This document shows, piece after piece, positions 2,217 through 47,919 of a stretch of 64,000 bases of DNA. The notes beneath the pieces are model-generated. The model did not search any database. It worked only from the letters and a program-made list of their open reading frames with translations, and was not told the origin of the DNA. Position numbers and translations under genes: made by a program. Position 1 is the stretch's first letter; each line of letters starts with the position of its first letter. The DNA lies in the sequence record MK250021.1; one strand, written 5' to 3'.

Positions 2217-2338
2217 TCATAAAGGAATAACATTATTTAACGATTTTGTTATTCCTTATTTTTATAATTTAAGTAAACTATTTCATGTATTCTGTATATA
2301 ATCTTTAAATTGTTTAATAAAAATAAAGAAATAAGTTT

Positions 2339-2863
2339 ATGACAGAAGTAAATGTGAATGGATCTATTGATCTTAATTTGAACCGTGGTAAGAGAGTGAA
2401 TAATGATAAACGTCCACGTATTAAGCGAGAGGAACGTAAGCCACGTGTTAAGACAGATGAAGAGTATATTGCGCAGCTTGAAGCAGCGATGCAGAAAGCG
2501 GGCGGACGTTATGTAAAGTTTGATGATATTGATCATACAGAGGGATTGATGGTTGCTGGTGTGCAATGTAAAAACGGTAATTATATGTTCGCCGTTATGA
2601 ATCGTGATCGTAAGGTACAGCTTGTTGGTAATAATGAGCATTTCTCAGTTATTCGTGATGTTCCAGCAAGTCTTTATGTATTGGATTATGTATATCATCG
2701 TGACCCTGAGATTTTGCTGAATATTGCTGATACATCATTCTATCAGGATGAGATTAAGTTGATCACTAAGATGTATATTAAGGTTGCAAAGAAAGTTAAT
2801 AAGGATAATAAGAAAAACACAAAGAAATCAAAGAAGAACACTAAGAAAAACACAAAGAAGTGA
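2339..2863 (+). CDS. hypothetical protein with Lys-rich KKNT C-terminal repeats (possible nucleic-acid binding)
   Basis: 174-aa ORF, upstream promoter motif at 2274, downstream hairpin terminator. Confidence 0.75.
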   Translation: MTEVNVNGSIDLNLNRGKRVNNDKRPRIKREERKPRVKTDEEYIAQLEAAMQKAGGRYVKFDDIDHTEGLMVAGVQCKNGNYMFAVMNRDRKVQLVGNNEHFSVIRDVPASLYVLDYVYHRDPEILLNIADTSFYQDEIKLITKMYIKVAKKVNKDNKKNTKKSKKNTKKNTKK

Positions 2864-2896
2864 TTAATAGATTTAATTTAGTTTACTTCTAAATAT

Positions 2897-2934
2897 AAAG
2901 AGATATATTCTAATATAGAGTATATCTCTTTTTT
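2897..2934 (+). terminator. intrinsic terminator
   Basis: AAAGAGATATA/TATATCTCTTT stem followed by a T-run. Confidence 0.75.
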
Positions 2935-2991
2935 CATAAACTTAATTTTAATTTTAACATATAATATTTAAAGTTATAATATTTTTAATAA

Positions 2992-3390
2992 ATGGAAAAA
3001 TTAAATTCATTCAAGGAACTGTTTACATGGAATAAAGATGAACAACAAGATTTAGAATTTGAAAATCTGAATCTTATAACTGCTGTTTATTCTGCACAAC
3101 GAATTGATTTGATACGGAGTGAATTTAAACGAACATATAAAGAATTAACAGATTTATTAGATATAAGGAAATCAAATGAATCGCTGAAAACAAGGATTAA
3201 TAATTTTAATTCAGAAGATTGGATACATAAAGTATATTCATTGATGAATGCGTCCGTAAAGAAATATGATGATTTAATGTATGCGATAAATTTTCATAAT
3301 ATATTATTTCCTGATGAACCTGCATTAGGATTAGATGAAGATGAAATAAAAGTTATAAATCAAATAAAAGGAATAGAGTTTATTACATAA
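2992..3390 (+). CDS. hypothetical protein
   Basis: 132-aa ORF. Confidence 0.7.
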   Translation: MEKLNSFKELFTWNKDEQQDLEFENLNLITAVYSAQRIDLIRSEFKRTYKELTDLLDIRKSNESLKTRINNFNSEDWIHKVYSLMNASVKKYDDLMYAINFHNILFPDEPALGLDEDEIKVINQIKGIEFIT

Positions 3391-3398
3391 TAAAAATG

Positions 3399-3430
3399 GG
3401 GATATAACAAATTGTATGTTATATCCCTTT
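3399..3430. terminator. bidirectional hairpin terminator between convergent genes
   Basis: GGGATATAAC/GTTATATCCC stem flanked by A- and T-runs. Confidence 0.7.
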
Positions 3431-3450
3431 ACTTGTTAATAGTTATTTAA

Positions 3451-3786
3451 TCAAAAGATACAATGTAGTATTCCACCTATGCAGATTACCAATGTATATT
3501 TTAACATATCTTTGTGATTGCATACGTCACACTTTTCTGTTTGCATATGATGTACATAACAAGAGTGTACGATCATCGCTAAGATTGAAAATGTAAATCC
3601 AGTTAACAAAGAAATTAATAGCCATGCTATGAACATGATAGCATTCCCGTTATTTGTTTTTACATCATTCCAAACTTCCTTAAGTATTTCCAATATGTAC
3701 AAGCCAAAAGTTATGAAGAACTATTTAACTGAATCAAATGTTAATCCCTTAAGGAAATTAACTAAATTTAAAAAAGAATTTAACAT
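3451..3786 (-). CDS. small membrane protein (111 aa) with one in-frame TAG (codon 22); holin candidate
   Basis: ATG at 3786 gives MLNSFLNLVNFLKGLTFDSVK(Q)FFITFGLYILEIL..., in frame with track ORF 3451-3702; several hydrophobic segments. Confidence 0.6.
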
Positions 3787-3904
3787 ATCAAATTATAAAT
3801 AACTATTTTTAGTATGTTATTAGTAAAACATACCTATATATTTATTAAACTATTTTATTTTATAATCATATAAACAATATGAAGTTAGATTAATTTTAAA
3901 TAAA

Positions 3905-4441
3905 ATGAAAGAGCAAAGATATACAATAAAGGATGCAGAGGAAATGTCTTATAATGAAGATATTATCTGTTTTTGGAAACCATACGGAATAAATGAAATA
4001 GGTCCACATGTATTGTGTCAGTGGTATAAGTCAATATTTAGTGATGATAAGAATACTTATTCTTGCACTGAACAATATATGATGTATCAGAAAGCTATTT
4101 TGTTTGGCGATGATGAAATTGCAATGAAAATTCTTCAAGAAAAACGTCCAGATCAAATGAAGAAATACGGAAGACTTATTAAGAATTTCGATGAAAAAGT
4201 TTGGAATGAAAATAAGTTTATGATTGTATATAATGGTAATTATCTTAAGTTCACGCAAAATAAGAAACTTAAGGATTATCTTAAATCTACAGGAAATTCT
4301 ATATTGGTAGAAGCATCTCCATATGATGCTGTATGGGGAGTAAAAATGTCAATGGATAATGACGATATTTTATATCCAGAAAAGTGGAATGGACAGAATT
4401 TATTAGGATTTGCACTGATGCAAGTAAGAGATGATATTTAA
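3905..4441 (+). CDS. NADAR family protein (YbiA-like)
   Basis: FW...LCQWY...EQYMMYQKAILFGD...K..GR...F.E..W...LVEASPYDAVWG...W.GQNLLGFALMQVR. Confidence 0.93.
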   Translation: MKEQRYTIKDAEEMSYNEDIICFWKPYGINEIGPHVLCQWYKSIFSDDKNTYSCTEQYMMYQKAILFGDDEIAMKILQEKRPDQMKKYGRLIKNFDEKVWNENKFMIVYNGNYLKFTQNKKLKDYLKSTGNSILVEASPYDAVWGVKMSMDNDDILYPEKWNGQNLLGFALMQVRDDI

Positions 4442-4460
4442 TATTTAATTTTATATAACT

Positions 4461-4976
4461 ATGAATATACAAGAGATTTTAGGAGAGATTAAGAAATTAT
4501 CTGATGATGATATTGTAAAGTTTAATAAGGAGTTTTCCACTTTTTATAAGCCATTTAAGAAGAAGGAAGATGAGATTAAAAAAGAGCAGAAAAAGAAAGA
4601 AGATGAATTGAAGCTTGTTCGTGTAAAAGAAATAGGTGATAAAATTTGTGAACTATATGAAATAAATGGATTTCCAGTTTCAAGTGTACATAAGTGTAAT
4701 GATGCACCTTACTCTACATATGAAGATTATGGTGGATATGTATTGGATGACTGTGATATAGAACCATATATTAAAAAAGTAGATGAGGAGACTGATAAAG
4801 AATTAGATAAATTATTTAACGATTTTTATAATAATATGTCTGATAAAGAATATCTTAATGAGAAAAAAGAAGCTGATGATTTATATCCAGGTGATACAAT
4901 ATTTAACTTCTATATGAAAGGTGGAACATTTAAAAAAGTAATGGACAATGAAGTGGAATCTGTTATTACAGTTTAA
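4461..4976 (+). CDS. hypothetical protein
   Basis: 171-aa ORF in a tightly packed + strand run. Confidence 0.7.
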   Translation: MNIQEILGEIKKLSDDDIVKFNKEFSTFYKPFKKKEDEIKKEQKKKEDELKLVRVKEIGDKICELYEINGFPVSSVHKCNDAPYSTYEDYGGYVLDDCDIEPYIKKVDEETDKELDKLFNDFYNNMSDKEYLNEKKEADDLYPGDTIFNFYMKGGTFKKVMDNEVESVITV

Positions 4977-5253
4977 GAATTATATAAAATATAAAACACC
5001 TTGGAAATATTGTCAATATAATAAACAACTATATAAAAATGATAAATTCCGAATAGAATATTTTTGGAGAAGAGAAAATCATTTTGCGATAGGTTTTTAT
5101 TATGATGGAAATTTTCATACAGAAGTATGGTCTAATAATGAAAGTTGGTTTGTAAATAAAATATATATTAATTTTATATATGCATCATTTTTAATTGTTA
5201 CAAAGAAAAAGTTATATTGTAAATATCCAGATGATTATTTTGATTTGAATTAA
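4948..5253 (+). CDS. hypothetical protein
   Basis: 101-aa ORF. Confidence 0.6.
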   Translation: MKWNLLLQFKNYIKYKTPWKYCQYNKQLYKNDKFRIEYFWRRENHFAIGFYYDGNFHTEVWSNNESWFVNKIYINFIYASFLIVTKKKLYCKYPDDYFDLN

Positions 5254-5255
5254 TT

Positions 5256-5456
5256 ATGAAATTATATCAGATTTATACTAAAGGTAATTATTGTAGTGGT
5301 GGATTTAATGAATCTTTTGATGAACCTATGGATGGTCCAGCATATAAAACAATTTTCACTACATATGAAAAAGCAAAAGAACATTTACCAGAAAAACATG
5401 GTGATAGATTTACAGGTTTTTCTGAGTATTATATAAAAGAAGTTGAAATAGAATGA
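5256..5456 (+). CDS. hypothetical protein
   Basis: 66-aa ORF, stop overlaps next start. Confidence 0.65.
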   Translation: MKLYQIYTKGNYCSGGFNESFDEPMDGPAYKTIFTTYEKAKEHLPEKHGDRFTGFSEYYIKEVEIE

Positions 5457-5821
5457 TTGATAATACGAAAGAATATATTGTATGTGCTGCTTATCTACAA
5501 ACTAGAAATACTAGTAATAGACAAAATATGATAGATAAACAAGGTAAAGATCCAAAATCAATATATTATGAACCACATAATCAAGTATTTGATATGAGAT
5601 TGGGGTTTAGACATCCTGATATTATATATCAATATGGTGATGAAATAAACAATAAAGAATCTGATGGTGGATTTATGACATCAAAAGGAAGATATGTAGG
5701 AAGAGTAGAAGCAATGAAAATAGCTTATGAATGTGGTCAAGTATCCAAGGAAAAAGCTATCAGGAATGATAAGTATATAAAGAATGGATATTGGCCATTA
5801 TATTCAGAAGATATTTATTAA
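5453..5821 (+). CDS. conserved phage hypothetical protein
   Basis: G.RH.DI...GGF.TSKGRYV.R.EAM.IA...GQ...LYSEDIY pattern, which I recognise from small phage proteins. Confidence 0.7.
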   Translation: MIDNTKEYIVCAAYLQTRNTSNRQNMIDKQGKDPKSIYYEPHNQVFDMRLGFRHPDIIYQYGDEINNKESDGGFMTSKGRYVGRVEAMKIAYECGQVSKEKAIRNDKYIKNGYWPLYSEDIY

Positions 5822-5833
5822 TTTTAATACAAT

Positions 5834-6088
5834 ATGAAAAAGAATAAAATTACTATTGAACTATCAAATTCTGAAATTAATAGATTAACTAATCTGTTAT
5901 TTAAAGGTACTGCATATGATGAAACTTATTATGATAAACGAACATGCACATTGGATGAAAAATTCAGAGAGAATTTTTGTCAGATGCTTGTAGATGGTTC
6001 AGAAAAATATAAAGATAAAAATATTAAAGTAACAACCTTTAATGGTATATTAAAAGATGTAGATAAAGATTATTACTTGTTTAATTAA
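5834..6088 (+). CDS. hypothetical protein
   Basis: 84-aa ORF. Confidence 0.65.
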   Translation: MKKNKITIELSNSEINRLTNLLFKGTAYDETYYDKRTCTLDEKFRENFCQMLVDGSEKYKDKNIKVTTFNGILKDVDKDYYLFN

Positions 6089-6091
6089 ATT

Positions 6092-6400
6092 ATGAGTATG
6101 ACATTAGATGAAGCTATTAAGCATGCAGATGAAGTATCAGAAACATGTGATAATAGAGATTGTGGATTAGAACATAAGCAACTTGCTAGTTGGTTGAGAG
6201 AACTTAAGGAATTAAGGAATAAACATATTCAAGATGAGTTAGAGAAAGATGCTACATTTTATGCAGATAAAACTATTTACGAAGGGAGTATATATGGATT
6301 TCCATCAGGTGATGTTAGAGAGAAATATAATGCCGTAAAATGTGCATATAAAGAAGGATTCTGCGCATGTTTAAATAAAAATATTAATACAAATGAGTGA
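6092..6400 (+). CDS. hypothetical protein
   Basis: MTLDEAIKHA...C..EHKQLASWLRELKELR, a common phage small-protein pattern. Confidence 0.7.
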   Translation: MSMTLDEAIKHADEVSETCDNRDCGLEHKQLASWLRELKELRNKHIQDELEKDATFYADKTIYEGSIYGFPSGDVREKYNAVKCAYKEGFCACLNKNINTNE

Positions 6401-6704
6401 GATAAGAAAAGGATGCTATATGCATACATCATATAATGGTCCATGTGATGATGAGGAAACATGGATTTTCCCTGATGGATTTGAAGGTGTAGATGATGAT
6501 ACTTATTATGAAATTGAATATGATTATCATTCAGCAGCAGATCCTATGGATCAATCATGTACATATCATGTAACATCTATTAAACCTGTTTCTATATTGA
6601 TGAAGAATGCTTATGAAATTATTCAGAAATATAAATATATGCAAAATCATATAGATGAGTTTGAAAAGTGGTTAAGTGACAATTATGAAATTAAACGAAT
6701 ATGA
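6393..6704 (+). CDS. hypothetical protein
   Basis: 103-aa ORF. Confidence 0.65.
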   Translation: MSEIRKGCYMHTSYNGPCDDEETWIFPDGFEGVDDDTYYEIEYDYHSAADPMDQSCTYHVTSIKPVSILMKNAYEIIQKYKYMQNHIDEFEKWLSDNYEIKRI

Positions 6705-7035
6705 ATTATGTAAAGCTTTCATTATGCCATGTTATTGGTATATCGAAGGTGAAGAACATGAAAAATTTTATGTTGATGAACAAACATGTGATTGGTATAA
6801 TTTCATAGAAAATGATGAGTTTAATAATAACGAAAAAGAAATACGTAAATGGTGGAAAATAATGTTATATAAACCATCAAATATAGAAACAAAGGATCTT
6901 ACAGAAGAACAATGTAAATGGTTGGTTAATGAGTGTTATCATGATATGATTAATATATATGATGATAAAGAAGATGATACAGATTATGAAAAATATGAAT
7001 GGGATTTTAAAAAACATTGTATAAAAAAAGATTAA
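6685..7035 (+). CDS. hypothetical protein
   Basis: ATG at 6685, TAA stop. Confidence 0.65.
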   Translation: MKLNEYELCKAFIMPCYWYIEGEEHEKFYVDEQTCDWYNFIENDEFNNNEKEIRKWWKIMLYKPSNIETKDLTEEQCKWLVNECYHDMINIYDDKEDDTDYEKYEWDFKKHCIKKD

Positions 7036-7065
7036 AGATATTTTTCATATTTAAATTTTAATATG

Positions 7066-7073
7066 TAACTTTG
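7066..7073 (+). promoter_or_regulatory. Bacteroidota-type -7 promoter element TAnnTTTG (TAACTTTG)
   Basis: Intergenic, about 25 nt upstream of ATG 7099. Confidence 0.55.
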
Positions 7074-7098
7074 AATTATAATTTTAATTTAATATTAT

Positions 7099-7329
7099 AT
7101 GAAATATCGTATTACAAAATCAGAAAAAGGTTATCGTGCTGAAATTGGTAAACATAATGCACGAAATGGTGTATTAGAATATATATCCATTGAGAACGAT
7201 AATAATTATTTGTGTAGTTGTGAAACTTATTATGAAACCGAGATTGATGCAATTGAAGCATGTAAGAAACATCATCATGAAAAGGGATATGATAAATTAC
7301 CTAAAGTAGTAGATGAGTTTGAACTTTAA
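7099..7329 (+). CDS. hypothetical protein
   Basis: 76-aa ORF. Confidence 0.65.
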   Translation: MKYRITKSEKGYRAEIGKHNARNGVLEYISIENDNNYLCSCETYYETEIDAIEACKKHHHEKGYDKLPKVVDEFEL

Positions 7330-7340
7330 ATTTATATATT

Positions 7341-7730
7341 ATGTGGTTAGCAAGGGATAAAGGCTTCGAATCATGCGGTAATGGATTTATTCTTGGTGAT
7401 GTTCATCTTTTTTCAAAGAAACCAAAACGTAAAATTAATAAAGATCGTAAGTGGGAGAAAGAACCATCTATATGGGATGGACATTGTGCAAAGATGAAGC
7501 TTAAATCGGATGAATATCCTGATTTAAAATGGGAAGATGAACCATTAGAAGTTGATTTAGATATTAATCATAATAGATGGGATTTAGATATTTGTAAATA
7601 TTTAACTGCTATTGAGAATATTGCAGGATGTTATGAAAATAAATTTACTAATGATAATCAAGGTTCAAAAATCTGTAATGAAATTTATAATAAAGTAAAA
7701 GAGTTAAAACAATTATTAGTTTTAAAATAA
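7341..7730 (+). CDS. hypothetical protein
   Basis: MWLARDK...L...KP...W...L.WEDEP.EV pattern seen in Bacteroidota phage small proteins. Confidence 0.7.
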   Translation: MWLARDKGFESCGNGFILGDVHLFSKKPKRKINKDRKWEKEPSIWDGHCAKMKLKSDEYPDLKWEDEPLEVDLDINHNRWDLDICKYLTAIENIAGCYENKFTNDNQGSKICNEIYNKVKELKQLLVLK

Positions 7731-7766
7731 GTTTAAGAATATCTTTCTTATTCCAATAAAAATATG

Positions 7767-7774
7767 TATCTTTG
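7767..7774 (+). promoter_or_regulatory. Bacteroidota-type -7 promoter element TATCTTTG
   Basis: Intergenic; identical octamer recurs at 11683, 35678, 43304, 45931 and 48190. Confidence 0.7.
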
Positions 7775-7807
7775 TAATAGAGTTTAATAACAATTAAAAG
7801 ATATATT

Positions 7808-8272
7808 ATGGATAAGAAAGATATTCTTTATAATTTAAAGAAGGTTAATAAGTATATTGATTATAAAATAGGCGATTGGGTAGAAACATGTAACATGCTT
7901 CCAGGTATTGTACAAGAAATTCATAATTATTATGATCCAAGAAAAAATATGCAATGCTTTGTAGAAGATGTTATTATTTATTATCCACATTATGCTATTG
8001 ATAATCCAGATTATCATGGTGGTTCATCATGTTCAATTACAGGATGTGGTGTTCATCAGATTTCGCAGGAATATGTAAAGATATTATTTTCATTAGGTTA
8101 TGATAAACTTGTTAATCTGTGGAATGATTATAAATTAAAGGATGATGAAATATCATGGGATGATTTAGTCAAGAAAGAATATGATAAACTTTCTGACGAA
8201 GAGAAATTAAATGGTATTATATTATTTAATATCGGCGAAGAATATTCACGAAAAATTAAAGATATAAAATAA
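7808..8272 (+). CDS. hypothetical protein
   Basis: 154-aa ORF. Confidence 0.7.
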   Translation: MDKKDILYNLKKVNKYIDYKIGDWVETCNMLPGIVQEIHNYYDPRKNMQCFVEDVIIYYPHYAIDNPDYHGGSSCSITGCGVHQISQEYVKILFSLGYDKLVNLWNDYKLKDDEISWDDLVKKEYDKLSDEEKLNGIILFNIGEEYSRKIKDIK

Positions 8273-8689
8273 ATGAATGATAATAAGTCAAATATAACGG
8301 GATTATATTTTGAAGATAATATGGCTGTTTTTAATAAAGCTGTAGTTTATCCTAAAAATTATAATCCTAAAACAGATTCAAAATTCATGCATGATTTGGA
8401 TTATACATCTGAATGGTGTGAACATTCTGAAGAGAGATTATTTTGGAATAATGATCTCATTGAGAATCCATTTATAACAAATGAATTTTATTATGCAGAA
8501 ATTAATCATCCTACAATGGGTAAAGCTATATATAGAAAACGAAAAAATGGTAAATATATATGGCAATTTGAAAATGAAAAAGATGTAAAGGTATCTATGA
8601 GATCATCATTTGGAAGTCAATATAAAGATATGATTAATGATGGTTATATTGTAATTAAGAAGGGACATAATAAAATTACATCAAATTAA
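8273..8689 (+). CDS. hypothetical protein
   Basis: 138-aa ORF. Confidence 0.65.
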   Translation: MNDNKSNITGLYFEDNMAVFNKAVVYPKNYNPKTDSKFMHDLDYTSEWCEHSEERLFWNNDLIENPFITNEFYYAEINHPTMGKAIYRKRKNGKYIWQFENEKDVKVSMRSSFGSQYKDMINDGYIVIKKGHNKITSN

Positions 8690-8700
8690 AATTAAAGCGT

Positions 8701-9219: not shown

Positions 9220-9419
9220 AAATATTTCAAGATGGTAATACGGATTATGATTATTATGAACATAATAATCATTTTACTGATGAGGAAGAAGATGTGATGA
9301 AAGATTATGAATGGTCTATCATGAGTCATCTATCAAAAGATGAAATAAATGAAATAAATGATTATGAATATAGTCTTTTATCTAGACAAGCAGATGATGA
9401 ATATGATAATTTTTATTAA
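9216..9419 (+). CDS. small acidic hypothetical protein
   Basis: 67-aa ORF. Confidence 0.55.
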   Translation: MKIFQDGNTDYDYYEHNNHFTDEEEDVMKDYEWSIMSHLSKDEINEINDYEYSLLSRQADDEYDNFY

Positions 9420-9424
9420 ATAAT

Positions 9425-9461: not shown

Positions 9462-9463
9462 CT

Positions 9464-11599: not shown

Positions 11600-11682
11600 A
11601 TTCTATATATAGTTTATCTAATTATTTTATAAAATAATAAGAAAAAAGTCTCATTAAATTTTTTATTTAGGAAATTAATATG

Positions 11683-12125: not shown

Positions 12126-12211
12126 ATATCTAAATTATATTAAGAGATAGATAATAAACAAACTTTATCTATCTCTTTTACTATAATAATAAATGATATT
12201 GATCTATACAG

Positions 12212-16081: not shown

Positions 16082-16312
16082 GAAAGAGAACAAGCGTCTT
16101 ATTCTTCTATTATTAATAATAGTCTTAATCAGACAATGAAGAAGATGACAATTATAACCATATGTTTAATGGTCGCAGCACTTATTCCAGGATTTTATGG
16201 AATGAATTTAAATAATGGAATAGAAACATGGACATATGGATTTCCTTTTGCTGTTTGTTTAACAGGAATATGTGCAGGAATATCTTATTTTTTATGTAAA
16301 CTATTTAAGTAA
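16082..16312 (+). CDS. corA: CorA-family Mg2+/Co2+ transporter, visible C-terminal part (5' part hidden in the gap)
   Basis: EREQASYSSIINNSLNQTMKKMTIITICLMVAALIPGFYGMNLNN...FAVCLTGICAGISYFLCKLFK*: N..N..MK..T, TM1, GMN signature, TM2. Confidence 0.85.
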   Translation, partial: EREQASYSSIINNSLNQTMKKMTIITICLMVAALIPGFYGMNLNNGIETWTYGFPFAVCLTGICAGISYFLCKLFK

Positions 16313-16326
16313 ATATATATATAAAT

Positions 16327-26804: not shown

Positions 26805-26920
26805 ATTTGTTAAATTTTAAACCATTATTATATAGTTTATATAATAATGTATAACTAATGTTTACTAAACTTTATTTTTATAATTAAATACAATAATTAT
26901 AAAATATTTTATTTATAGTT

Positions 26921-37785: not shown

Positions 37786-37789
37786 AATT

Positions 37790-39973: not shown

Positions 39974-39981
39974 TAAAGATT

Positions 39982-40971: not shown

Positions 40972-41101
40972 ATAGATAAATATAATGGATTCATAATTAT
41001 TTATGAATTTATATTTTGCAAAGTTGAGCATATTACTAAATTTAGTAATATGCTCTTTTATTTTATAGATAAATATAATGCAAAATATAAATTAAATAAT
41101 T

Positions 41102-42067
41102 ATGAGAAATATTACACATGATGAATTTATCACATGTGCTAGATCTATACACGGTGATAAATATGATTATTCATAGACAAAGTTTATTAATAAATCTACG
41201 TTAATTAAAGTATCTGATAATATACATGGTATTTTTGAAATTCTTCCATTTAAACATTTATTATACGATGGATATAATAAAAATTATTTAAATAGTTATG
41301 CGAATGAATACAAAAAACATTTTATAGAAGTATGTAAATTAGTTCATAATAATAAATATGATTATTCAAAAACAGTATATATACATTCATAAACAAAAAT
41401 GTTAATAACATGTCCTATACATGGTGATTTTTATCAATTACCAATGTCACATATACATGGTAAAGGTTGTAGTAAATGTGGTGATTTATCTACAGCTTAT
41501 AAACAAGCATATACAACTGAAGAATTTATTAATAAATCAAAATAGATACATGGTAATAAATATGATTATTCTAATGTACATTATATAAGTAACAAATATA
41601 AGGTTATTATAGGATGTCCTATACATGGTAATTTTTTATAGTCTCCTGATAAACATTTAAATGGTCATGGTTGTCCAAAATGTGTTTTATATAAATTAGA
41701 AAATACAATATCATTATTACTTGATAACAATAATATTAAATATAATAAAAATTATAAAGAATTTAAATGGTTAATAAATGATATTAATCATTCATTAGAA
41801 TTAGATTTCTATATACCTGAATATAATATTGCTATAGAATGTTAGGGTAAATAGCATTTTGAACCAGTTGAAAAATTTGGAGGAAATGAAGCATATTAAA
41901 TATAGGTTAAAAATGATTAGATAAAATAGACATTATGTAAATAGCATAATATAAAATTATGTTATTTTTGTGACAAATATAACTATATAAATAATTATAA
42001 ATTAGGATATTTAACATATAAAACAGAAAATTTATTAGAATATATACGATTTCATTTATTAGTTTAA
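41102..42067 (+). pseudogene. degenerate homing endonuclease (KYDYS...CPIHG repeats plus nuclease domain); TAG=Gln, with two in-frame TAA stops
   Basis: Three HGxKYDYS-type repeats, CP.HG, G.GC.KC, LDFYIPEYNIAIEC(Q)GK(Q)HF; in-frame TAA at 41390 and 41897. Confidence 0.8.
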
Positions 42068-42072
42068 TATAC

Positions 42073-42420
42073 ATTTCAATAGCCCGTTCACTTGCATGTG
42101 ATTCAAAATTACTTATGTTAGATGAATATTCGTCAGGTCTTGATTATTTCACTAAATTTGAATTACAAGATCTTCTATTAAGTATTTTTAATAATAGAGA
42201 TGTAGATAGAACATTCTTGATAGTTACTCATAATATTTCAGAGGCTGTATATCTTTCAAATCGTATTTATATATTGGAACCAAATCCATGTAGAATCAAG
42301 GATGTAATTGATATTAAATTCAGTCAACCAAGAACACAAGCTATTCGTGAAACAGATGAATTTAAAAATTATCAAGCTAAAGTTCTTAAAGCATTAAATG
42401 AAACAATTAATAATAAGTAA
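42073..42420 (+). pseudogene. C-terminal half of a second ABC ATPase (Walker A and signature missing)
   Basis: ISIARSLACDSKLLMLDEYSSGLD...IVTHNISEAVYLSNRI; in-frame TAA upstream at 42019; no N-terminal half seen. Confidence 0.75.
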
Positions 42421-42431
42421 TTTTAAAAATT

Positions 42432-42767
42432 ATGACAAAACATATTATAACATTTGGTGATCTTAATTCTGGAGATCATATTTTTAGATATAGAATTGTT
42501 AAAGACAAAGCTAAATTAGAAACATTAGTAGTACAAGATATTAAAATTACAAATGATAAAGCTATAATAATTATAAAAGATTCATCCATAATTTATACTT
42601 TTGATAAAGAACGAACATATATTATGGGCGGTAATAATGATGATTGGAGTAGTTCTGTCATTGTCTCCGATTATGAATTAGTGGAATTCATTAAAACTGT
42701 TATTAATATAACAAAACAACCACTTATAAGACAACATGTTAATTTAATAAATTTTATATCAGATTGA
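42432..42767 (+). CDS. hypothetical protein
   Basis: 111-aa ORF followed by a hairpin at 42774-42812. Confidence 0.65.
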   Translation: MTKHIITFGDLNSGDHIFRYRIVKDKAKLETLVVQDIKITNDKAIIIIKDSSIIYTFDKERTYIMGGNNDDWSSSVIVSDYELVEFIKTVINITKQPLIRQHVNLINFISD

Positions 42768-42825
42768 AATATAAAAAGGTGAGATAATATACTAAACTAT
42801 CTCACCTTTTTTCTTTATATATAAT

Positions 42826-43278
42826 ATGAAAATATTAAATGATATAGTTAATAAAAAAGTATTAATAATATATAAATGTAATGGTCCTGCTGGATGGCAT
42901 AGAGATTATTGTGGTTATAAAATTGGGAAAATAGTAGAATATAATATTGAAAATAATACTATTAATATTGAAGATAAAAAGAAAAATATAAAAACATATA
43001 AAATTATAGATAAAAAAGATCCATTTAATTTAAATTTAATACAAAATAATGATAATAGATTCGCATATTATCATATTTCAAAATATAGGCAAATACGTGA
43101 ATGGGAAAATGTTTTTATATATAATGATGCATTAACTATTTTAAAAAATAGTATTAAACAATCACATTCACAATATGTATATAAACTATTTTGTTTATCT
43201 TCATTTTCATATGGTAAAAAAACAAAGAAAAGGTTTTTAAGAGATTTATTAAAGGAATTAGAAGAAAATTATCAATAA
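42826..43278 (+). CDS. paralog family X member 4
   Basis: MKILNDIVNKKVLIIY...YCGYKIGKIVEYN...DPF...KK.FL..LLKEL. Confidence 0.75.
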   Translation: MKILNDIVNKKVLIIYKCNGPAGWHRDYCGYKIGKIVEYNIENNTINIEDKKKNIKTYKIIDKKDPFNLNLIQNNDNRFAYYHISKYRQIREWENVFIYNDALTILKNSIKQSHSQYVYKLFCLSSFSYGKKTKKRFLRDLLKELEENYQ

Positions 43279-43303
43279 TATTTTTTGTTTAAAATAAAAT
43301 GTG

Positions 43304-43311
43304 TATCTTTG
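43304..43311 (+). promoter_or_regulatory. Bacteroidota-type -7 element TATCTTTG
   Basis: Upstream of ATG 43353; downstream AACAATTAAAAATATAA is shared with the 11683 and 45931 sites. Confidence 0.7.
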
Positions 43312-43352
43312 TATTGTTAATAAAATAATGAACAATTAAAAATATAAACAAT

Positions 43353-43679
43353 ATGAAAGCAAATTTTGTAACGGTTATCAAGAAGAGAGCAATCAAGAAT
43401 GTACCAGCATTTCAAGATTTCTCAATGAAACAGATTAAGGTTATTAGTAATTCACCTAATTATCCAAATTCTGTAACTTTATCTATGGACATTTATTGTG
43501 ATAATGTTGATGGTTATATTTTTAATAATGCATCTACAAATGAACAATATGCATTGACATCTGTTCAACTTAGTGACGCATTACGTAAGATGATTAGTAA
43601 TAAAAAGTGTTATAAGCCTAACAGTAAGGAAGATTTACTTAGACTTACATTTGATACTATTGAATCTTTTAAATTTTAA
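43353..43679 (+). CDS. hypothetical early protein
   Basis: 108-aa ORF. Confidence 0.7.
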   Translation: MKANFVTVIKKRAIKNVPAFQDFSMKQIKVISNSPNYPNSVTLSMDIYCDNVDGYIFNNASTNEQYALTSVQLSDALRKMISNKKCYKPNSKEDLLRLTFDTIESFKF

Positions 43680-43691
43680 TTAATTTAAATG

Positions 43692-43720
43692 TAGACAATA
43701 ATACATTATTAATATATAAT
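43692..43720 (+). promoter_or_regulatory. sigma70-like promoter TAGACA-N17-TATAAT upstream of the tRNA
   Basis: Exact 17-nt spacer; second copy TAGACA-N17-TATAAA at 43780-43808. Confidence 0.65.
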
Positions 43721-43928
43721 ATATATAAATTATTTGATTAAACAAATTAATGAAAAATTAAAAATAATTTATTAAAATGTAGACAATATCAAATAAATAA
43801 CATATAAATAATATAATAATTAAAAACAAACGCTTATTTGATTTTCGTAGCGTTATGGATAAGTTGATAGAATTCAGAAATTCCTTTTAAGACGAATACA
43901 CATGGAATGGTCCATTGGTGGAATTGGT

Positions 43929-44237
43929 AAAGTGTTTGCCTGCATTAATTTGTAGAATCCATCAAATTCAGTATCAGTTAGGATTAAATTTTAAATATTA
44001 GTAGTTGCTATTGACGAAAATATTGACAATAATTAATTTATTGTTACCTGAGGAATAAGTGTTTATTTAATAAACAACGAAGAAGCTGACTAAGAAAACC
44101 TAAGGTCTTCATAAGAAGATAGCTTGGTAATACTGAGCCAAGATAATTTTTAATTATAAGGTGCAGAGACTATACGGTGGGAACTAATAGCAAGTTAAGA
44201 TATAGTCCAAACTTTATAGAAATATAAAGAGTTTTTG
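43929..44237 (+). ncRNA. group I intron 1 (309 nt) in the tRNA D-loop
   Basis: Exon ends in U, intron ends in G; P1 GGT|AAA pairs TTTGCC with U-G at the splice site; P10 GTGTTT pairs 3' exon AGACAC; P3 CCATC/GGTGG; P7 GACTA(44168)/TAGTC(44203); S element AAGATATAGTCC. Confidence 0.88.
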
Positions 44238-44252
44238 AGACACGAGGGACTT

Positions 44253-44600
44253 AAAAAATTTGAGTGCTCTATTGAGAAATCATAGAAGTAGAATCTCCCT
44301 AACGAAACGGAAGCCTAATTATTGGTGACAATAATGGTGGTGACGAACTCACTAAGTTGTTATAGAACGTTAATCTATATTAAATGTAAATTGAAGTGTT
44401 ACAGCATAAATAGCGAAGAGACTATAGAGGAGATACCTAAGTTAAAGTACACGAAGAATAATCAATTAGATTATCACTATATATGAAGAGTATATAGTTT
44501 TATAATAAGGAATGCGCATTACTTTAATATGGTAGTAAAATAGTCCAGACTACAACATCTTAATAATTAAGATGGCTTGTATTAAAGCAAGAGTAGTAAG
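44253..44600 (+). ncRNA. group I intron 2 (348 nt) in the anticodon (U^AA)
   Basis: P1 ACTT|AAA pairs TTTGAGT with U-G at the splice site; P3 ATCTCC(44293)/GGAGAT(44429); P7 GACTA(44420)/TAGTC(44541); terminal G 44600. Confidence 0.9.
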
Positions 44601-44656
44601 AAAATCCCTTGGGCAGAAATGCCCGTGCCGGTTCGAATCCGGCATGGACTACATAT

Positions 44657-44700
44657 AAAAGTCTGATAATCAATAGCTTAGATTATCAGACTTTTATTTT
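44657..44700 (+). terminator. intrinsic terminator after the tRNA
   Basis: AAAAGTCTGATAATC/GATTATCAGACTTTT 15-bp perfect stem followed by a T-run. Confidence 0.85.
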
Positions 44701-44736
44701 TATATAGTATATAAAGTATAATTAATATTTTTAATA

Positions 44737-45873
44737 ATGATTACAATTACAGAACAATATATAAAAGAGTACCAAAAGAAATTAGATGATATTTCTAAAT
44801 CATTTGATTTAGAGAAACAACATATTATAGTTGAAGAATTATCAATTAAAGTTTCTGCACCAGATTTTTGGGATGATTTTGAAAGTGCGACATCAATCAC
44901 AAAAGAACTTAATACAGCAAAAGAAAAGATAGATGATGTTGAACATATGAAAATGCTTATTGATGAGTTATCAACTGCATTAATGTATTATAAGGAATTT
45001 GAAGGTAAAGATGAAGAAGAATATATAAATCTAGCGAATTCTGAATTAATTAGTGAATTCAGTAAATTTGAGGATAAGTATAGATTTGTTGATCCTACAG
45101 ATTCATTAGGAGCTGTATTAGACATTAATGCAGGTGCAGGAGGAACAGAAGCAAATGATTGGGCAAATATGTTATTCCGTATGTATGAGATGTGGGCAAA
45201 ATCAAATAATTATAAGTTTAAAGTTTTATATTATTCAGAAGGGGATAAAGTAGGTATTAAAAATGTATCTATTGAAATTACTGGTAATAATGCGTATGGA
45301 ACATTAAAAGGTGAAACCGGTGTTCATAGAATGGTAAGGGTTTCACCATATAATGCACAAGGTAAACGTATGACTAGTTTTGCTGCAGTTTCTGTTGTGC
45401 CTTTAGTAGATAATTCTATCAAGGTTGAAATTGACGATTCTAAATTAACAATAGATACATTTAGATCTTCTGGTGCTGGTGGTCAAAATGTAAATAAGGT
45501 AGAATCTGGTGTACGTGTAAATTATATGTATACAGATCCAGATACAGGTGAAACAGAAAAAATTCAAGTTGCAAATACAGAAACAAGAGATCAACCAAAG
45601 AATAAAGAAAGAGCAATGCAAATTCTTAAATCTATTCTTTATAAGAAAGCATTGGATAAACAATTAGCTAAGAAAAAAGAAATAGAAGATGCAAAACTTA
45701 AAAATGAATGGGGTGCACAAATTAGATCTTATGTATTTGATGATAAGCGAGTAAAAGATCATCGTACAGGTTATCAAACAACTGATGTTGATTCTGTTAT
45801 GAATGGAAATATAAATGGTTTTATAGAATCATATAATAATTGGATTATTGAGCAAGAAAATAATAGACTTTAA
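44737..45873 (+). CDS. prfB: peptide chain release factor 2
   Basis: P.FWDD, GAGGTEANDWA.ML.RMY, GE.GVHRMVRVSPY...R.TSFA (SPF/SPY specificity motif), SGAGGQNVNKVES, WG.QIRSYV; single continuous ORF with no TAG. Confidence 0.96.
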   Translation: MITITEQYIKEYQKKLDDISKSFDLEKQHIIVEELSIKVSAPDFWDDFESATSITKELNTAKEKIDDVEHMKMLIDELSTALMYYKEFEGKDEEEYINLANSELISEFSKFEDKYRFVDPTDSLGAVLDINAGAGGTEANDWANMLFRMYEMWAKSNNYKFKVLYYSEGDKVGIKNVSIEITGNNAYGTLKGETGVHRMVRVSPYNAQGKRMTSFAAVSVVPLVDNSIKVEIDDSKLTIDTFRSSGAGGQNVNKVESGVRVNYMYTDPDTGETEKIQVANTETRDQPKNKERAMQILKSILYKKALDKQLAKKKEIEDAKLKNEWGAQIRSYVFDDKRVKDHRTGYQTTDVDSVMNGNINGFIESYNNWIIEQENNRL

Positions 45874-45930
45874 TTAAATATTTTCTTATAAATAATTAAT
45901 GAAATATTTTCCTATATAAAATAAATTATG

Positions 45931-45938
45931 TATCTTTG
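45931..45938 (+). promoter_or_regulatory. Bacteroidota-type -7 element TATCTTTG
   Basis: Upstream of ATG 45986. Confidence 0.7.
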
Positions 45939-45985
45939 TATTGTTGATAATTAAATTAGTATAAACAATTAAAAATATAAAGGTT

Positions 45986-46207
45986 ATGAAAGTACGTATA
46001 GGAAGAGACGAAAAGTTCATTGAACTTGGTAAGTATGACGATATAACAATTATAGATGATGCTGGTACAGAGTATCGCATTGAAGCAAATGATCCTTGTT
46101 ATCAAGGTAATGGTATAAAAGTTTATGATATTGATGGGTGCATTCTTGTAAAACCATCTACATCAAATCTTGTACAAATTTTCTCGACATCAAAGATTGA
46201 GTTGTAA
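45986..46207 (+). CDS. hypothetical early protein
   Basis: 73-aa ORF. Confidence 0.65.
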   Translation: MKVRIGRDEKFIELGKYDDITIIDDAGTEYRIEANDPCYQGNGIKVYDIDGCILVKPSTSNLVQIFSTSKIEL

Positions 46208-46262
46208 TATCTATAATTGTTTTATATGTTAATATGAAAATTTTAACTATAAAATATATTAT

Positions 46263-46790
46263 ATGGGTTGTCACACATGGGTTTATAAGCTAATCAGTTC
46301 GATGTCTAAAGATGAAATAAACAGAGAAATTGATTGTGTTATTAACGAACGTAAACAGCGTTTTTACATGTCTTCTAATGAGGATGAATATGCAAATAGA
46401 ATGGTAAAACTTACTAAAGATAGTTCTGTTGCACCAATGTCTTATGCAGATGCTATTAAACGTTATAAAGAAGCAAGAGAAGAAACACAACTTATTATAG
46501 ATAAGTTAACACTTGCTAAGCAAACAGGTGATTTATCTGTAATAACATATAAAAATGGATTTGATACATCAGAAGATGATACATATCTTTTCTTATGTAC
46601 AAATACCCCATTTAGATGTTATGAATATACAGATAAACAATTTACAAATAAAGATGAATTGATTTCATATATACATTCAGTTGATCCAAAAAAAATTGAA
46701 GTTTATAATAATGATAAATCATTAGATGAACAGATATATGATTTCTTTAAACTTCATGGTGACAATAATTTATTATTTGAATTCGGTTAA
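46263..46790 (+). CDS. hypothetical protein
   Basis: MGCHTW start, 175 aa. Confidence 0.7.
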   Translation: MGCHTWVYKLISSMSKDEINREIDCVINERKQRFYMSSNEDEYANRMVKLTKDSSVAPMSYADAIKRYKEAREETQLIIDKLTLAKQTGDLSVITYKNGFDTSEDDTYLFLCTNTPFRCYEYTDKQFTNKDELISYIHSVDPKKIEVYNNDKSLDEQIYDFFKLHGDNNLLFEFG

Positions 46791-46792
46791 AA

Positions 46793-47257
46793 ATGAGAAC
46801 AAATAAGTTAAATGAATGTGTACTATCAATGATGTATACAAACATGGATTTAGAAATTGATTCTTATTCATTGTTATGTTGTTTAGATGAAATTGGATTT
46901 ACATATCCGCCCTATCCTAATTCAACTGAATATTTGAATATTGGTGAATCACGGAACCTTAGAGAATTTAATGAAACTAATAAACATGTATTCTATCACA
47001 TGATTTATGATTTTATTAAATGGACATATGGAATATCTGTAAGTTTCTGGGAATCTAAATCAATATCATATAATGAAAGAGGAACAATTGAAAAAGTTGA
47101 TATTGAAGGTATGGATGAAACATCAGATATATATGGTATTATTACAAATATGGTATTTGATGATTTAAATACTGCATATAAAACTGTTGCACATATGATT
47201 GTTTCCGATTTAAATTGGAGACATAAACAAAAGAAAAAATTTTCTAATGTTAAATAA
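46793..47257 (+). CDS. hypothetical protein
   Basis: 154-aa ORF. Confidence 0.65.
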   Translation: MRTNKLNECVLSMMYTNMDLEIDSYSLLCCLDEIGFTYPPYPNSTEYLNIGESRNLREFNETNKHVFYHMIYDFIKWTYGISVSFWESKSISYNERGTIEKVDIEGMDETSDIYGIITNMVFDDLNTAYKTVAHMIVSDLNWRHKQKKKFSNVK

Positions 47258-47318
47258 GACTTTTTTAATAAACAAATATATACATAATAATTAATAATAT
47301 TTTAAATTCTATTTAAAC

Positions 47319-47858
47319 ATGGGATTGTTTGATTTTCTTAATAAGAATAAGTCAGAGGATGTAAGTACATTGTTTACTGACGAAAATAAAGGAAGTTGTG
47401 CTTCTGCAGCTGATGCATATAAGAAGTCTCGTTATGGAATTCTTAAGACTGATAAAATGATGCTTGAGGAATTTTTCACGGATGTTAAGCTTCTTGTAGA
47501 GCAGAAAAATATGGAGCGAAGCTATTGTGGAATGGTTCAAATCGGGGATGATATTATTAAGTACCTTCCTAAGATTAAGGATCGTCTTGGACGTCAGCTC
47601 GGTTATAAAGTAATTGTGTTGGATGATAATACAGTTATTACTAATAATGTATCAAATACAAAAGATATAATTAAGAGTGGACATACGTATCTCCTTCTTA
47701 TTTGGGATAAGTTGTCTGTAGAGGAAGTTGCAGAATATAATGCTACACATCCAGTAAATGATGATTCAGATGATACATCAACTGTTGATTCATTGAAGCA
47801 AGATGAAGATACAAAGAAAGTTGAAACATCTGATACTTCAAAGAAAAACACAAAGTAG
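47319..47858 (+). CDS. hypothetical protein (ends at TAG, or at TAA 47879 if read through)
   Basis: 179-aa ORF. Confidence 0.7.
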   Translation: MGLFDFLNKNKSEDVSTLFTDENKGSCASAADAYKKSRYGILKTDKMMLEEFFTDVKLLVEQKNMERSYCGMVQIGDDIIKYLPKIKDRLGRQLGYKVIVLDDNTVITNNVSNTKDIIKSGHTYLLLIWDKLSVEEVAEYNATHPVNDDSDDTSTVDSLKQDEDTKKVETSDTSKKNTK

Positions 47859-47890
47859 AAGAAACTTAATAAAAAATAATTATCAATTTG

Positions 47891-47919
47891 TAGACAATTT
47901 GTTTATTAAGTAATATAAA
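47891..47919 (+). promoter_or_regulatory. promoter TAGACA-N17-TATAAA upstream of the structured non-coding region
   Basis: Same motif and spacing as 43692 and 43780. Confidence 0.6.

Follow-up and report, generated by a model that had tools for sequence, protein, structure and literature searches.

The recurrent TA(A/G)AC(A/T)-N17-TATAA(A/T) motif in the genome of Prevotella phage Lak-B2 (MK250021.1) is a real and conserved promoter-like class, termed class E here and one of three such classes in this megaphage, and it probably depends on a phage-encoded sigma factor and switches on the genes that change how the TAG codon is read. The window analysed is a stretch of 64,000 nucleotides corresponding to positions 248001-312000 of the record. 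A first-pass annotation of this DNA had reported the motif with its exact 17-nt spacing just upstream of genes or RNAs, and this observation is confirmed and can be extended to the whole genome. Its interpretation, an E. coli-like middle promoter class that implies a phage sigma factor, is supported only in part.

All exact sites listed previously are present, and two near-matches (44687 and 26866) are real but weaker, whereas strict matches at 16297 and 41927 and matrix matches at 11624-11652(-), 12159, 42793 and 47256 had been missed. The placement just upstream of a gene or RNA holds, as is evident from the features of the window, for which distances are counted from the end of the -10 box and scores are those of the class E matrix:
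2274..2302 (+), class E promoter (TAAACT-N17-TATAAT), strict match, 17.7 bits, intergenic, 37 nt before ORF 2339-2863.
2937..2965 (+), class E promoter, strict match, 18.1 bits, 27 nt before ORF 2992-3390.
3846..3874 (+), class E promoter, strict match, 17.2 bits, 31 nt before ORF 3905-4441, a NADAR domain protein (Pfam NADAR, E = 2e-51).
11624..11652 (-), class E promoter (GAGACT variant), 17.1 bits, 25 nt before the NAD-dependent DNA ligase gene 9464-11599 on the - strand (PHROG NAD-dependent DNA ligase, E = 6e-87).
12159..12187 (+), class E promoter (CAAACT variant), 15.1 bits, before ORF 12212-12832, which spans a 24-nt masked run.
16297..16325 (+), class E site, strict match but weaker (12.9 bits), 132 nt before ORF 16457-16732 and partly overlapping a small called ORF.
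26836..26864 (-), class E promoter, strict match, 16.7 bits, 32 nt before ORF 26463-26804 (- strand), back to back with the next site.
26866..26894 (+), weak class E-like site (TAAACT-N17-TACAAT), 11.3 bits and thus below the 12-bit cut-off, before the TAG-containing ORF 26921-28057, which holds masked runs.
41927..41955 (+), class E site, strict match, 12.7 bits, 160 nt before ORF 42115-42420.
42793..42821 (+), possible class E site (-10 box TATATA), 13.7 bits, ending only 5 nt before the called start at 42826, so that either the site or the start codon is doubtful.
43692..43720 (+), class E promoter, strict match, 15.5 bits, first of a tandem pair ahead of the intron-bearing tRNA, with orthologous sites in Lak-C1 and Lak-A1.
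43780..43808 (+), class E promoter, strict match, 15.2 bits, second of the tandem pair, about 100 nt before the tRNA at 43909, its boxes being conserved in Lak-C1 and Lak-A1 while the spacer changes.
43909..44652 (+), tRNA gene with a long variable arm and a 649-nt intron in the anticodon loop, called Leu(GAG) by ARAGORN, although the anticodon is uncertain. It was found only when introns were allowed and was missed by the default ARAGORN run and by Rfam.
44687..44715 (+), class E promoter (CAGACT variant), 14.4 bits, 22 nt before the release factor gene, conserved in Lak-C1.
44737..45873 (+), class-I peptide chain release factor of RF2 type, TAG-free, with SPY in place of SPF and GGQ present (Pfam PCRF, E = 3e-48, and RF-1, E = 2e-30).
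45864..45892 (+), class E promoter, strict match, 14.5 bits, upstream of a class H promoter (45907-45946), both preceding ORF 45986-46207. The Lak-C1 and Lak-A1 orthologue reads TAAACT...TATAAG with a diverged spacer.
47256..47284 (+), class E site (AAGACT...TATACA), 12.8 bits, 35 nt before ORF 47319-47858, conserved in Lak-C1 and Lak-A1.
47891..47919 (+), class E promoter for a small structured RNA, strict match, 17.7 bits. The orthologue in Lak-C1 scores 18.2 bits with a diverged spacer.
47926..48162 (+), candidate non-coding RNA of about 230 nt, ending in an intrinsic terminator (stem 48115-48147 plus a T run), with a minimum free energy of -56.3 kcal/mol (z = -6.2; 0 of 200 shuffles fold as well).
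48166..48205 (+), class H (Bacteroidota-type, TAtcTTTG) promoter before ORF 48227-49819. The other class H sites in the window are 7042-7081, 7743-7782, 11659-11698, 35654-35693, 43280-43319 and 45907-45946.
57284..57309 (+), class L (T4-late-like, ATAAATA) promoter before the TAG-recoded ORF 57330-59951. The other class L sites in the window are 1483-1508, 17565-17590, 18425-18450, 21552-21577 and 41059-41084 on the + strand and 57254-57279 on the - strand.
Both RF2 and tRNA introns have been reported for Lak phages before (PMC6784885). The runs of N in the window are masks and not gaps of estimated length, as motif hits keep one constant offset of 248000 between window and record coordinates on both sides of them (3846 maps to 251846, 16297 to 264297, 26836 to 274836, and 41927 to 289927). 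The N runs together therefore have the true length of the complete circular record, and continuity and reading frame are preserved. No listed site touches an N run, and the window counts leave out whatever lies under the 1089 masked bases.

Enrichment over shuffled sequence had been named beforehand as a test of the motif, and the window holds 10 strict hits whereas dinucleotide shuffles give a mean of 1.14, with 0 of 100 shuffles reaching 10. In the 550-kb genome the strict motif occurs 80 times, compared to 19 times for the backwards pattern, and 70 of these hits are intergenic although only about 11% of the genome is non-coding. The spacing is rigid, as N16 and N18 give 8 hits each and every spacer length from 10 to 25 other than 17 gives 4-20. 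With half-site matrices in intergenic DNA, N17 gives 100 pairs whereas N16 and N18 give 5 each. Expectation-maximisation seeded only with TAGAC or TAAAC, i.e., with the -35 half alone, recovers TATAA at exactly 17 nt in about 135 of 342 upstream regions, and the resulting matrix finds 138 sites at 12 bits or more, against 19 in a reversed-genome control, and 93 against 1 at 14 bits or more. Of the 138 sites, 123 are intergenic, the median distance from the -10 box to a same-strand start codon is 36 nt, and 90 of 121 sites lie within 150 nt of one, although the gene calls were made in this study and distances as well as TAG counts carry some error.

The class is also conserved in related phages. 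Lak-C1 has 77 strict hits against 13 in the control and Lak-A1 has 75 against 18. At five promoters of the window the boxes are 93% and 87% identical to Lak-C1 and Lak-A1, respectively, whereas the spacers are 69% and 61% identical and coding sequence 75% and 77%. In four distant megaphage loci, N17 gives 21 hits, against 1-6 at other spacers.

Two further putative promoter classes emerged. Class H is of the Bacteroidota type (TGTATCTTTGTATTG, i.e., TAnnTTTG) and has 57 sites, 7 of them in the window, all before TAG-free genes; the matrix scores of the sites in the window are 27-42 bits and the reversed-genome control gave no hit. Class L is T4-late-like (ATAAATA) and has about 90 sites, mostly before TAG-recoded structural genes. 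In-frame TAG occurs in the first downstream gene in 0 of 50 cases for class H, 27 of 88 for class E, and 70 of 93 for class L, the classes having been compared by Fisher tests. TAG-containing genes, for which the endonuclease gene at 26921 had been singled out as an exception to the class, are therefore no exception, since 27-30 of about 90 class E genes carry in-frame TAG. Class H genes include tRNA nucleotidyltransferase and polynucleotide kinase, class E genes include DNA ligase, a helicase, and NAMPT, and class L genes include tail sheath and major head protein. However, class E also heads some clearly late genes, such as the portal gene (14 TAG codons, 19.2 bits), and is therefore not a clean temporal class. 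The earlier proposal that it includes RF2, a tRNA, and a putative non-coding RNA holds.

A search for sigma-family genes shows that three are encoded in the genome, all outside the window. An ECF-type protein (genome 340823-341758) possesses Sigma70_r2 and r4_2 domains, and its only PDB match is SigW of Bacillus subtilis (E = 3e-12). An RpoD/RpoS-like protein (genome 199451-200464, - strand) has regions 1.2, 2, 3, and 4. A gp55-like protein matches phrog_234 (E = 4e-11), and its only PDB match is T4 gp55. A class E site lies directly in front of the ECF sigma gene and another one, of 17.6 bits, heads the gp55-like gene, and class E probably also drives the TAG-suppressor tRNA. The arrangement of a class H promoter, a gene, a class E promoter, and then the ECF sigma gene is seen in Lak-B2 and in A/C-type contigs. 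In more distant relatives the ECF sigma gene is headed by a class H-type promoter, and in the 73%-identical relative (L041) no good class E site precedes it, and autoregulation is therefore not universal. Searches with the multisubunit RNA polymerase families Rpb2_6 and Rpb1_2 gave no hit in the genome. A search for a T7-like RNA polymerase gave none either, but as that family matched none of the control genomes, this shows nothing about its absence.

Class E sits between a host-type and a T4-late-like class, both in its TAG usage and in which class drives which sigma gene, and a middle class read by a phage sigma factor is therefore the best reading. Its core is (T)A(A/G)AC(A/T), followed by T-rich sequence, a rigid 17-nt spacer, and (a)TATAA(A/T), with about 90-140 copies in Lak-B2. 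In the programme that we propose, unmodified Prevotella RNA polymerase carrying its own primary sigma factor would start at the approximately 57 class H promoters (TTTTT..N..TGTATCTTTGTATTG), and one class H unit would run into the gene for the ECF-type sigma factor. This sigma would redirect host core polymerase to class E promoters, including the one in front of its own gene. Class E units would then express replication and nucleotide-metabolism genes, some tRNAs and small RNAs, RF2, probably the TAG-suppressor tRNA, and the gp55-like late sigma factor, which in turn would read the class L promoters before the TAG-recoded structural genes. The analysis demonstrates the motif with its spacing, position, orientation, and conservation, the three classes with their TAG bias, and the sigma genes, whereas it is inferred from sequence alone that these sites fire as promoters, in which order they do so, and which sigma reads which class. 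We are highly confident that the sites are promoters and moderately confident that class E is a middle-type class read by a phage-encoded sigma factor. That this factor is specifically the ECF-type sigma is the reading we favour, but it remains tentative. In its favour, the -35 box, AAC plus a T tract, resembles the ECF consensus tGAAACnTTTt, and ECF sigma factors typically have autoregulatory promoters and adhere closely to consensus (PMC5758882). In contrast, the -10 box TATAAW is sigma-70-like and not the CGT-type box of characterised ECF sigma factors, and TTGACA-like geometry with a 17-nt spacer fits an RpoD-like sigma equally well.

It is possible, though we consider it unlikely, that class E is read by the RpoD/RpoS-like protein and that the ECF sigma serves a smaller, undetected regulon. 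TARACW-N17-TATAAW has exactly the geometry of a group-1 sigma promoter with a TATAAT-like -10 box, and the protein keeps the aromatic melting residues of region 2.3. However, its region 4.2 has E, T, and L where E. coli sigma-70 has the -35 contact residues R584, E585, and R588, N16 and N18 are essentially absent, and no class E site lies in front of its gene, which instead follows a terminator hairpin and a class L motif, suggesting late synthesis. Less likely still, class E might be read by a host factor, either a Prevotella alternative or ECF sigma or the host primary sigma remodelled by a phage activator that binds the TARAC box in the manner of T4 MotA/AsiA. A conserved box at about -35 combined with a generic AT-rich -10 box is what T4 middle promoters look like, and as most Lak proteins have no known function, an unrecognised activator could exist. 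On the other hand, no credible MotA DNA-binding domain was found (best hit 13 bits), the Bacteroidota primary sigma requires TAnnTTTG (PMC6847099), which class E lacks, and the phage carries three sigma genes of its own.

A phage RNA polymerase too diverged for detection by Pfam seems very unlikely. Jumbo phages such as phiKZ carry highly diverged multisubunit polymerases, and Pfam searches can miss such enzymes, but besides the lack of hits to the two multisubunit families, a bipartite motif with a 17-nt spacer is typical of sigma-dependent promoters and three sigma genes imply that a bacterial core enzyme is used. That the motif is no promoter at all, but a chance product of AT-rich DNA or a site for some other DNA-binding protein, is a remote possibility. 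Although TATAA-like words are common in a genome of 26% G+C, this reading is contradicted by a spacing peak 10- to 20-fold above neighbouring spacers, by the far fewer sites in the reversed-genome control, by the orientation of the sites towards same-strand start codons about 36 nt away, and by boxes that are more conserved than coding sequence.

Among known systems, ECF (group 4) sigma-dependent promoters, e.g., those of B. subtilis SigW, SigV, SigX, and SigM (tGAAACnTTTt ... CGTA/CGTC; PMC5758882), share with class E a -35 box centred on AAC and followed by a T-rich tract, close adherence to consensus, a rigid spacer, and a site directly before the sigma factor's own gene, and SigW is also the best structural match of the phage sigma. 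If the TA of CGTA is aligned with the first TA of TATAA, the spacer is 16 nt, as for SigW. However, the -10 box of class E is TATAA(A/T) without CG, G replaces A at the third position of the TARACW box in about 30% of sites, the regulon is very large (about 100 or more promoters), the sigma has an acidic N-terminal extension of about 100 residues, and no anti-sigma factor was identified. With E. coli-type sigma-70 promoters (TTGACA-N17-TATAAT), class E shares two hexamers, a 17-nt spacer, and a TATAAT-like -10 box, but it is not simply E. coli-like as previously suggested, because the second -35 position is A and not T, the third is A more often than G, the last -10 position is A or T equally often, N16 and N18 are not tolerated, and a generic TTGACA/TATAAT scan is not enriched (39 found against 50.7 expected). 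The -35 box, (T)A(A/G)AC followed by T-rich sequence, is closer to ECF-type AAC boxes (PMC5758882).

The three-tiered layout resembles the temporal promoter classes of phage T4 (early sigma-70, middle MotA/AsiA, and late gp55 with TATAAATA) and the sigma cascade of Bacillus phage SPO1, with strong host-like early promoters of extended conservation, a middle class depending on a phage factor, late promoters carrying only an ATAAATA-type -10 box, and a gp55-like protein being encoded. In contrast, the middle class appears to use a complete replacement sigma factor, as in SPO1, rather than sigma appropriation, the host consensus is of the Bacteroidota -33/-7 type, and the cascade is interlaced with TAG stop-codon recoding. 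Bacteroidota primary promoters (-33 TTTG / -7 TAnnTTTG; PMC6847099) lie in the same genome and at the same distance from start codons, and the phage uses them as well, its class H matching this consensus (TAtcTTTG), whereas class E has no TTTG element and is a separate class.

The motif TARACW-N17-TATAAW, here called class E, occurs 10 times in the window against 1.14 expected, and none of 100 shuffles reaches 10, these counts leaving aside 1089 masked bases. Motif hits on both sides of the N runs keep the same offset of 248000 to the record, so that the N runs are masks of true length and continuity and reading frame are intact. For analysis of the whole genome of Prevotella phage Lak-B2 (MK250021.1), a complete circular record of 549,839 bp from baboon faeces, to which the window is 100% identical and of which it covers positions 248001-312000, the sequence was reassembled from the remainder of the record plus the window, and 591 genes were called with a simple codon-usage caller of our own. 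The genome is 26% G+C, and TAG is read as a sense codon in part of it. Reading TAG as Q opens long frames at 17606-31774 and 49873-64000 of the window, while 152-17499 and 31786-49819 are TAG-free, in agreement with published work on Lak phages (PMC6784885). In the whole genome the motif occurs 80 times, against 19 for the backwards pattern. The decisive control is spacer length, as N17 gives 80 hits, 70 of them intergenic, whereas the other spacers from N10 to N25 give 4-20, N16 and N18 giving 8 each. With half-site matrices in intergenic DNA, N17 gives 100 pairs, N16 gives 5 and N18 gives 5. The two conserved elements therefore lie at a fixed helical distance, as in bipartite promoters of the sigma-70 family.

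Expectation-maximisation on 342 upstream regions, seeded only with TAGAC or only with TAAAC, converged on the same model, (t)A(A/g)AC(w)(w)Ttt, a gap and then aTATAAw, with about 135 occurrences. Scanning the genome with this matrix gives 138 sites at 12 bits or more, against 19 in a reversed-genome control, and at 14 bits or more the counts are 93 against 1. Of the 138 sites, 123 are intergenic, the median distance from the end of the -10 box to a same-strand start codon is 36 nt, and 90 of 121 sites lie within 150 nt of one. They are thus located upstream of predicted transcription units and oriented towards them. The window holds about 15 credible sites, including all those listed in the first-pass annotation and six more. 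The observation made there, a recurrent motif with exact 17-nt spacing just upstream of genes or RNAs, is confirmed, and enrichment over shuffled DNA, which had been set as a test beforehand, was found.

The motif is also conserved. Lak-C1 and Lak-A1, which are about 80% identical to Lak-B2 in DNA, show the same excess, with 77 against 13 and 75 against 18 hits, respectively. The window promoters at 43780, 44687, 45864, 47256 and 47891 have positional orthologues in which the boxes are 93% and 87% identical, whereas the spacers are 69% and 61% and coding DNA is 75% and 77% identical. Four loci from more distant megaphages, whose ECF sigma is 42-73% identical, give 21 hits at N17 and 1-6 at other spacers, the signal being strongest in the 62% and 73% relatives.

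The proposal of the first-pass annotation that this is an E. coli-type promoter class, different from the Bacteroidota primary promoter and read as a middle class by a phage-encoded sigma factor, is partly supported. The E. coli sigma-70 consensus has TTGACA at -35 and TATAAT at -10 with an invariant T at -7, and tolerates spacers of 16-18 nt. In contrast, the class E matrix shows A (0.91) at the second -35 position, A (0.68) or G (0.29) at the third, and A or T at the last -10 position, N16 and N18 are not tolerated, and a generic E. coli sigma-70 scan is not enriched (39 found against 50.7 expected). The matrix has no TTTG and does not fit the -7 element TAnnTTTG of the Bacteroidota primary (sigma-ABfr) promoter either. 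Its -35 element, with A 0.91, A/G 0.68/0.29, A 0.88 and C 0.79 followed by T-rich positions (0.57-0.68), does have the AAC core and proximal T tract of ECF sigma-dependent promoters (PMC5758882), but the -10 box, aTATAAw with almost no C or G, is not of the CGT/CGTC/CGTA type. Class E also differs from the T4 late promoter, which consists of a single TATAAATA-type -10 element without a -35 box, as class E requires the -35 box.

Within the window, the class E sites would drive an RF2-type release factor, a tRNA, a structured RNA, a NADAR-domain protein, the NAD-dependent DNA ligase and several small genes of unknown function, which includes the tRNA, RF2 and putative ncRNA that the first-pass annotation had assigned to the class. 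The features of the window with bearing on this are as follows.

9464-11599: NAD-dependent DNA ligase gene, headed by a class E site.
26836-26894: two class E-type sites standing back to back on opposite strands, with -35 boxes one base apart that form an inverted repeat (TGTTTA C TAAACT).
43909-44652: tRNA with a long variable arm and a 649-nt intron, behind a tandem pair of class E sites.
44737-45873: RF2-type release factor, with a class E site at 44687, carrying SPY where bacterial RF2 has the SPF stop-codon recognition tripeptide.
47926-48162: candidate small RNA of about 230 nt between a class E site and a strong terminator, folding with z = -6.2 and followed immediately by a class H promoter for the next gene.
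7042-7081, 7743-7782, 11659-11698, 35654-35693, 43280-43319, 45907-45946 and 48166-48205 (+ strand): class H sites.
1483-1508, 17565-17590, 18425-18450, 21552-21577, 41059-41084 and 57284-57309 (+ strand) and 57254-57279 (- strand): class L sites, of which the divergent pair at 57254-57309 would serve the two large recoded operons.

The tRNA at 43909-44652 is found by ARAGORN only if introns are allowed, as the default run found no tRNA in the window, and Rfam searches at gathering and at E <= 1 gave nothing useful and recognise no intron family here. The intron segment at about 44250-44555 is about 80% identical to DNA annotated inside the 'DNA primase' gene of crAss-like phage cr116_1, and a shorter piece matches IAS virus, which suggests a mobile RNA element shared between Lak and crAss-like phages. 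Nine sequencing runs on record as RNA, all kept as contigs, each hold only 5-7% of the sampled words of 43000-48900. About 20 gut, pig, dog and wastewater RNA-type runs likewise each hold only 5-7% of the sampled words of this stretch, suggesting that one short part of it is widely present or expressed.

Two further promoter classes emerged. The most over-represented words in upstream DNA belong to class H, which consists of TTTTT, a gap and then (a/g)TGTATCTTTGTATTG. Class H has 57 sites in the genome and none in the control, 56 of them intergenic and a median 39 nt from the ATG. The core TGTATCTTTGTATTG is nearly invariant, its TAtcTTTG being the Bacteroidota -7 element TAnnTTTG (PMC6847099), and a T run lies at about -33. 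In the 160 upstream gaps with neither motif, expectation-maximisation found class L, (a/g)ATAAATA..AA with no -35 box, 21-31 nt from the ATG. The class L matrix, which carries little information in an AT-rich genome, gives 87 sites at 11 bits or more, against 17 in the control, and only 8 class L sites overlap a class E site. Class L resembles the T4 late promoter TATAAATA. Together the three classes cover 210 of the 323 genes with an upstream gap of 45 nt or more.

The three classes differ in the TAG content of the first gene downstream, when TAG codons in the last 7% of a frame, which may be true stop codons, are ignored.

In-frame TAG codons in the first gene downstream of each promoter class, given as numbers of genes that are TAG-free, have one TAG, and have two or more TAG.
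Class H: 50, 0, 0
Class E: 61, 10, 17
Class L: 23, 9, 61
All genes: 382, 51, 158

Fisher tests on the first, unfiltered TAG counts give p = 2e-7 for H against all genes, p = 4e-13 for L against all genes, and p = 1e-9 for E against L. Among subtypes of class E, TAGAC against TAAAC, TATAAA and TATAAATA showed no significant link to TAG content, and TATAAT alone showed a nominal excess before TAG-containing genes (p = 0.011, uncorrected for five tests). Annotated class L genes include tail sheath and major head protein, whereas class H genes include tRNA nucleotidyltransferase and polynucleotide kinase. Class E genes include the DNA ligase, a DNA helicase, homing endonucleases and NAMPT, but also the portal protein. 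Outside the window, a sub-family of class E promoters, TAGACTTTTT(C/T)..AAA.....AGTATAAT, is found at Lak-B2 genome positions 222582(+), 543725(+), 94863(-), 335824(-), 337196(-) and 384919(-). Each sits in a repeated element of about 300 nt with conserved downstream sequence and no ORF for 200-1500 nt, and copies occur in tandem clusters in Lak-C1 and Lak-A1. They may be the 'highly expressed intergenic regions' reported in PMC6784885. In addition, ARAGORN calls a tRNA with anticodon TTA, which would read TAA, at genome 346127-346199, and a class E site lies about 320 nt upstream of it.

The search for sigma-70-family genes identified three sigma-family genes in the genome, all outside the window.

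340823-341758: ECF-type sigma, TAG-free.
199451-200464 (- strand): RpoD/RpoS-like sigma.
405724-406110 (positions 13724-14110 of the Lak-B2 locus L019): gp55-like sigma.

The only PDB match of the ECF-type sigma is B. subtilis SigW. In Lak-B2 a 16.7-bit class E site lies directly in front of its gene and follows a gene headed by a class H promoter, a layout that is kept in A/C-type contigs, where the sites score 19.1 bits. Among loci from distant relatives, a 12.3-bit site is present in L043 and no good site is present in L041 or L042, and in distant relatives the gene is headed by class H-type promoters. The RpoD/RpoS-like sigma gene follows a terminator and a class L motif, and region 4.2 of its product lacks the E. 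coli -35 contact residues. A scan of genome contigs for its origin gave one 26%-identical hit, which is uninformative. The gp55-like sigma matches phrog_234, has T4 gp55 as its only PDB match, and its gene has a 17.6-bit class E site in front. Three in-frame TAG codons within the region homologous to T4 gp55 are conserved in Lak-B2, Lak-C1, Lak-A1 and a further Lak-like IMG/VR genome (G001, the contig behind locus L034). The nearest recognisable promoters upstream of the TAG-suppressor tRNA(CTA) at 415547 are tandem class E sites at genome 414205 and 414300, and two ORFs lie between them and the tRNA.

In our model, host polymerase with its own sigma factor would fire class H promoters early and under the standard genetic code, and read-through from a class H unit would make the ECF-type sigma, which would activate class E promoters including its own. 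Class E would supply replication functions, RF2, the suppressor tRNA and the late sigma, and the gp55-like sigma would fire class L promoters before the TAG-rich structural genes. The motif, its spacing, placement and conservation, the three classes with their TAG bias, and the presence of the sigma genes follow directly from the sequences, whereas transcription from these sites, its timing, and the assignment of a sigma factor to each class are inferred.

With regard to the factor that reads class E, the AAC-plus-T-tract -35 box, the rigid spacer and the site before its own gene favour the ECF-type sigma (compare PMC5758882), whereas the TATAA -10 box is unlike known ECF -10 boxes and points the other way. 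The RpoD-like sigma is the main rival. A fourth sigma factor seemed possible from a weak region-4 hit at genome 166.7 kb, but this hit is an HNH endonuclease with helix-turn-helix domains. With regard to sigma appropriation as at T4 middle promoters (MotA/AsiA), a search of the genome for a MotA-like activator gave no credible hit (best PF09158 hit 13.3 bits, E = 0.03). There is no recognisable multisubunit RNA polymerase gene either, since Pfam Rpb2_6 and Rpb1_2 gave no hit, whereas the T7-like family, also without a hit, matched none of the control genomes and is uninformative.

A more far-reaching reading, which we consider possible but tentative and rather less likely than not, is that class E is the switch tier of a transcription cascade gated by the genetic code. 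In this view, class E promoters would turn on together RF2, the TAG-suppressor tRNA(CTA) and a late sigma gene whose own reading frame carries in-frame TAG codons. Late transcription of the TAG-rich structural genes from class L promoters could then begin only after TAG has been reassigned, which would be a feed-forward lock coupling a sigma cascade to stop-codon recoding.

Lak megaphages are uncultivated, about 550 kb long and widespread in gut microbiomes, and most of their genes have no known function. The three-class promoter map offers a first predicted expression programme, a way to sort hundreds of unknown genes into provisional early, middle and late sets, and a testable link between sigma switching and TAG recoding. 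The class E and class H elements are also candidate orthogonal promoter and sigma parts for Bacteroidota. In the papers that could be searched (PMC6784885, bioRxiv 10.1101/2021.08.26.457843 and PMC11165621), Lak sigma factors are mentioned once and promoters never. Recoding was proposed as a post-transcriptional timer in bioRxiv 10.1101/2021.08.26.457843, where no promoters or sigma factors were analysed. Sigma-switch cascades and class-specific phage promoters as such are established, for example in T4 and SPO1, and the programme inferred here for Lak-B2 would be a further case of such a cascade.
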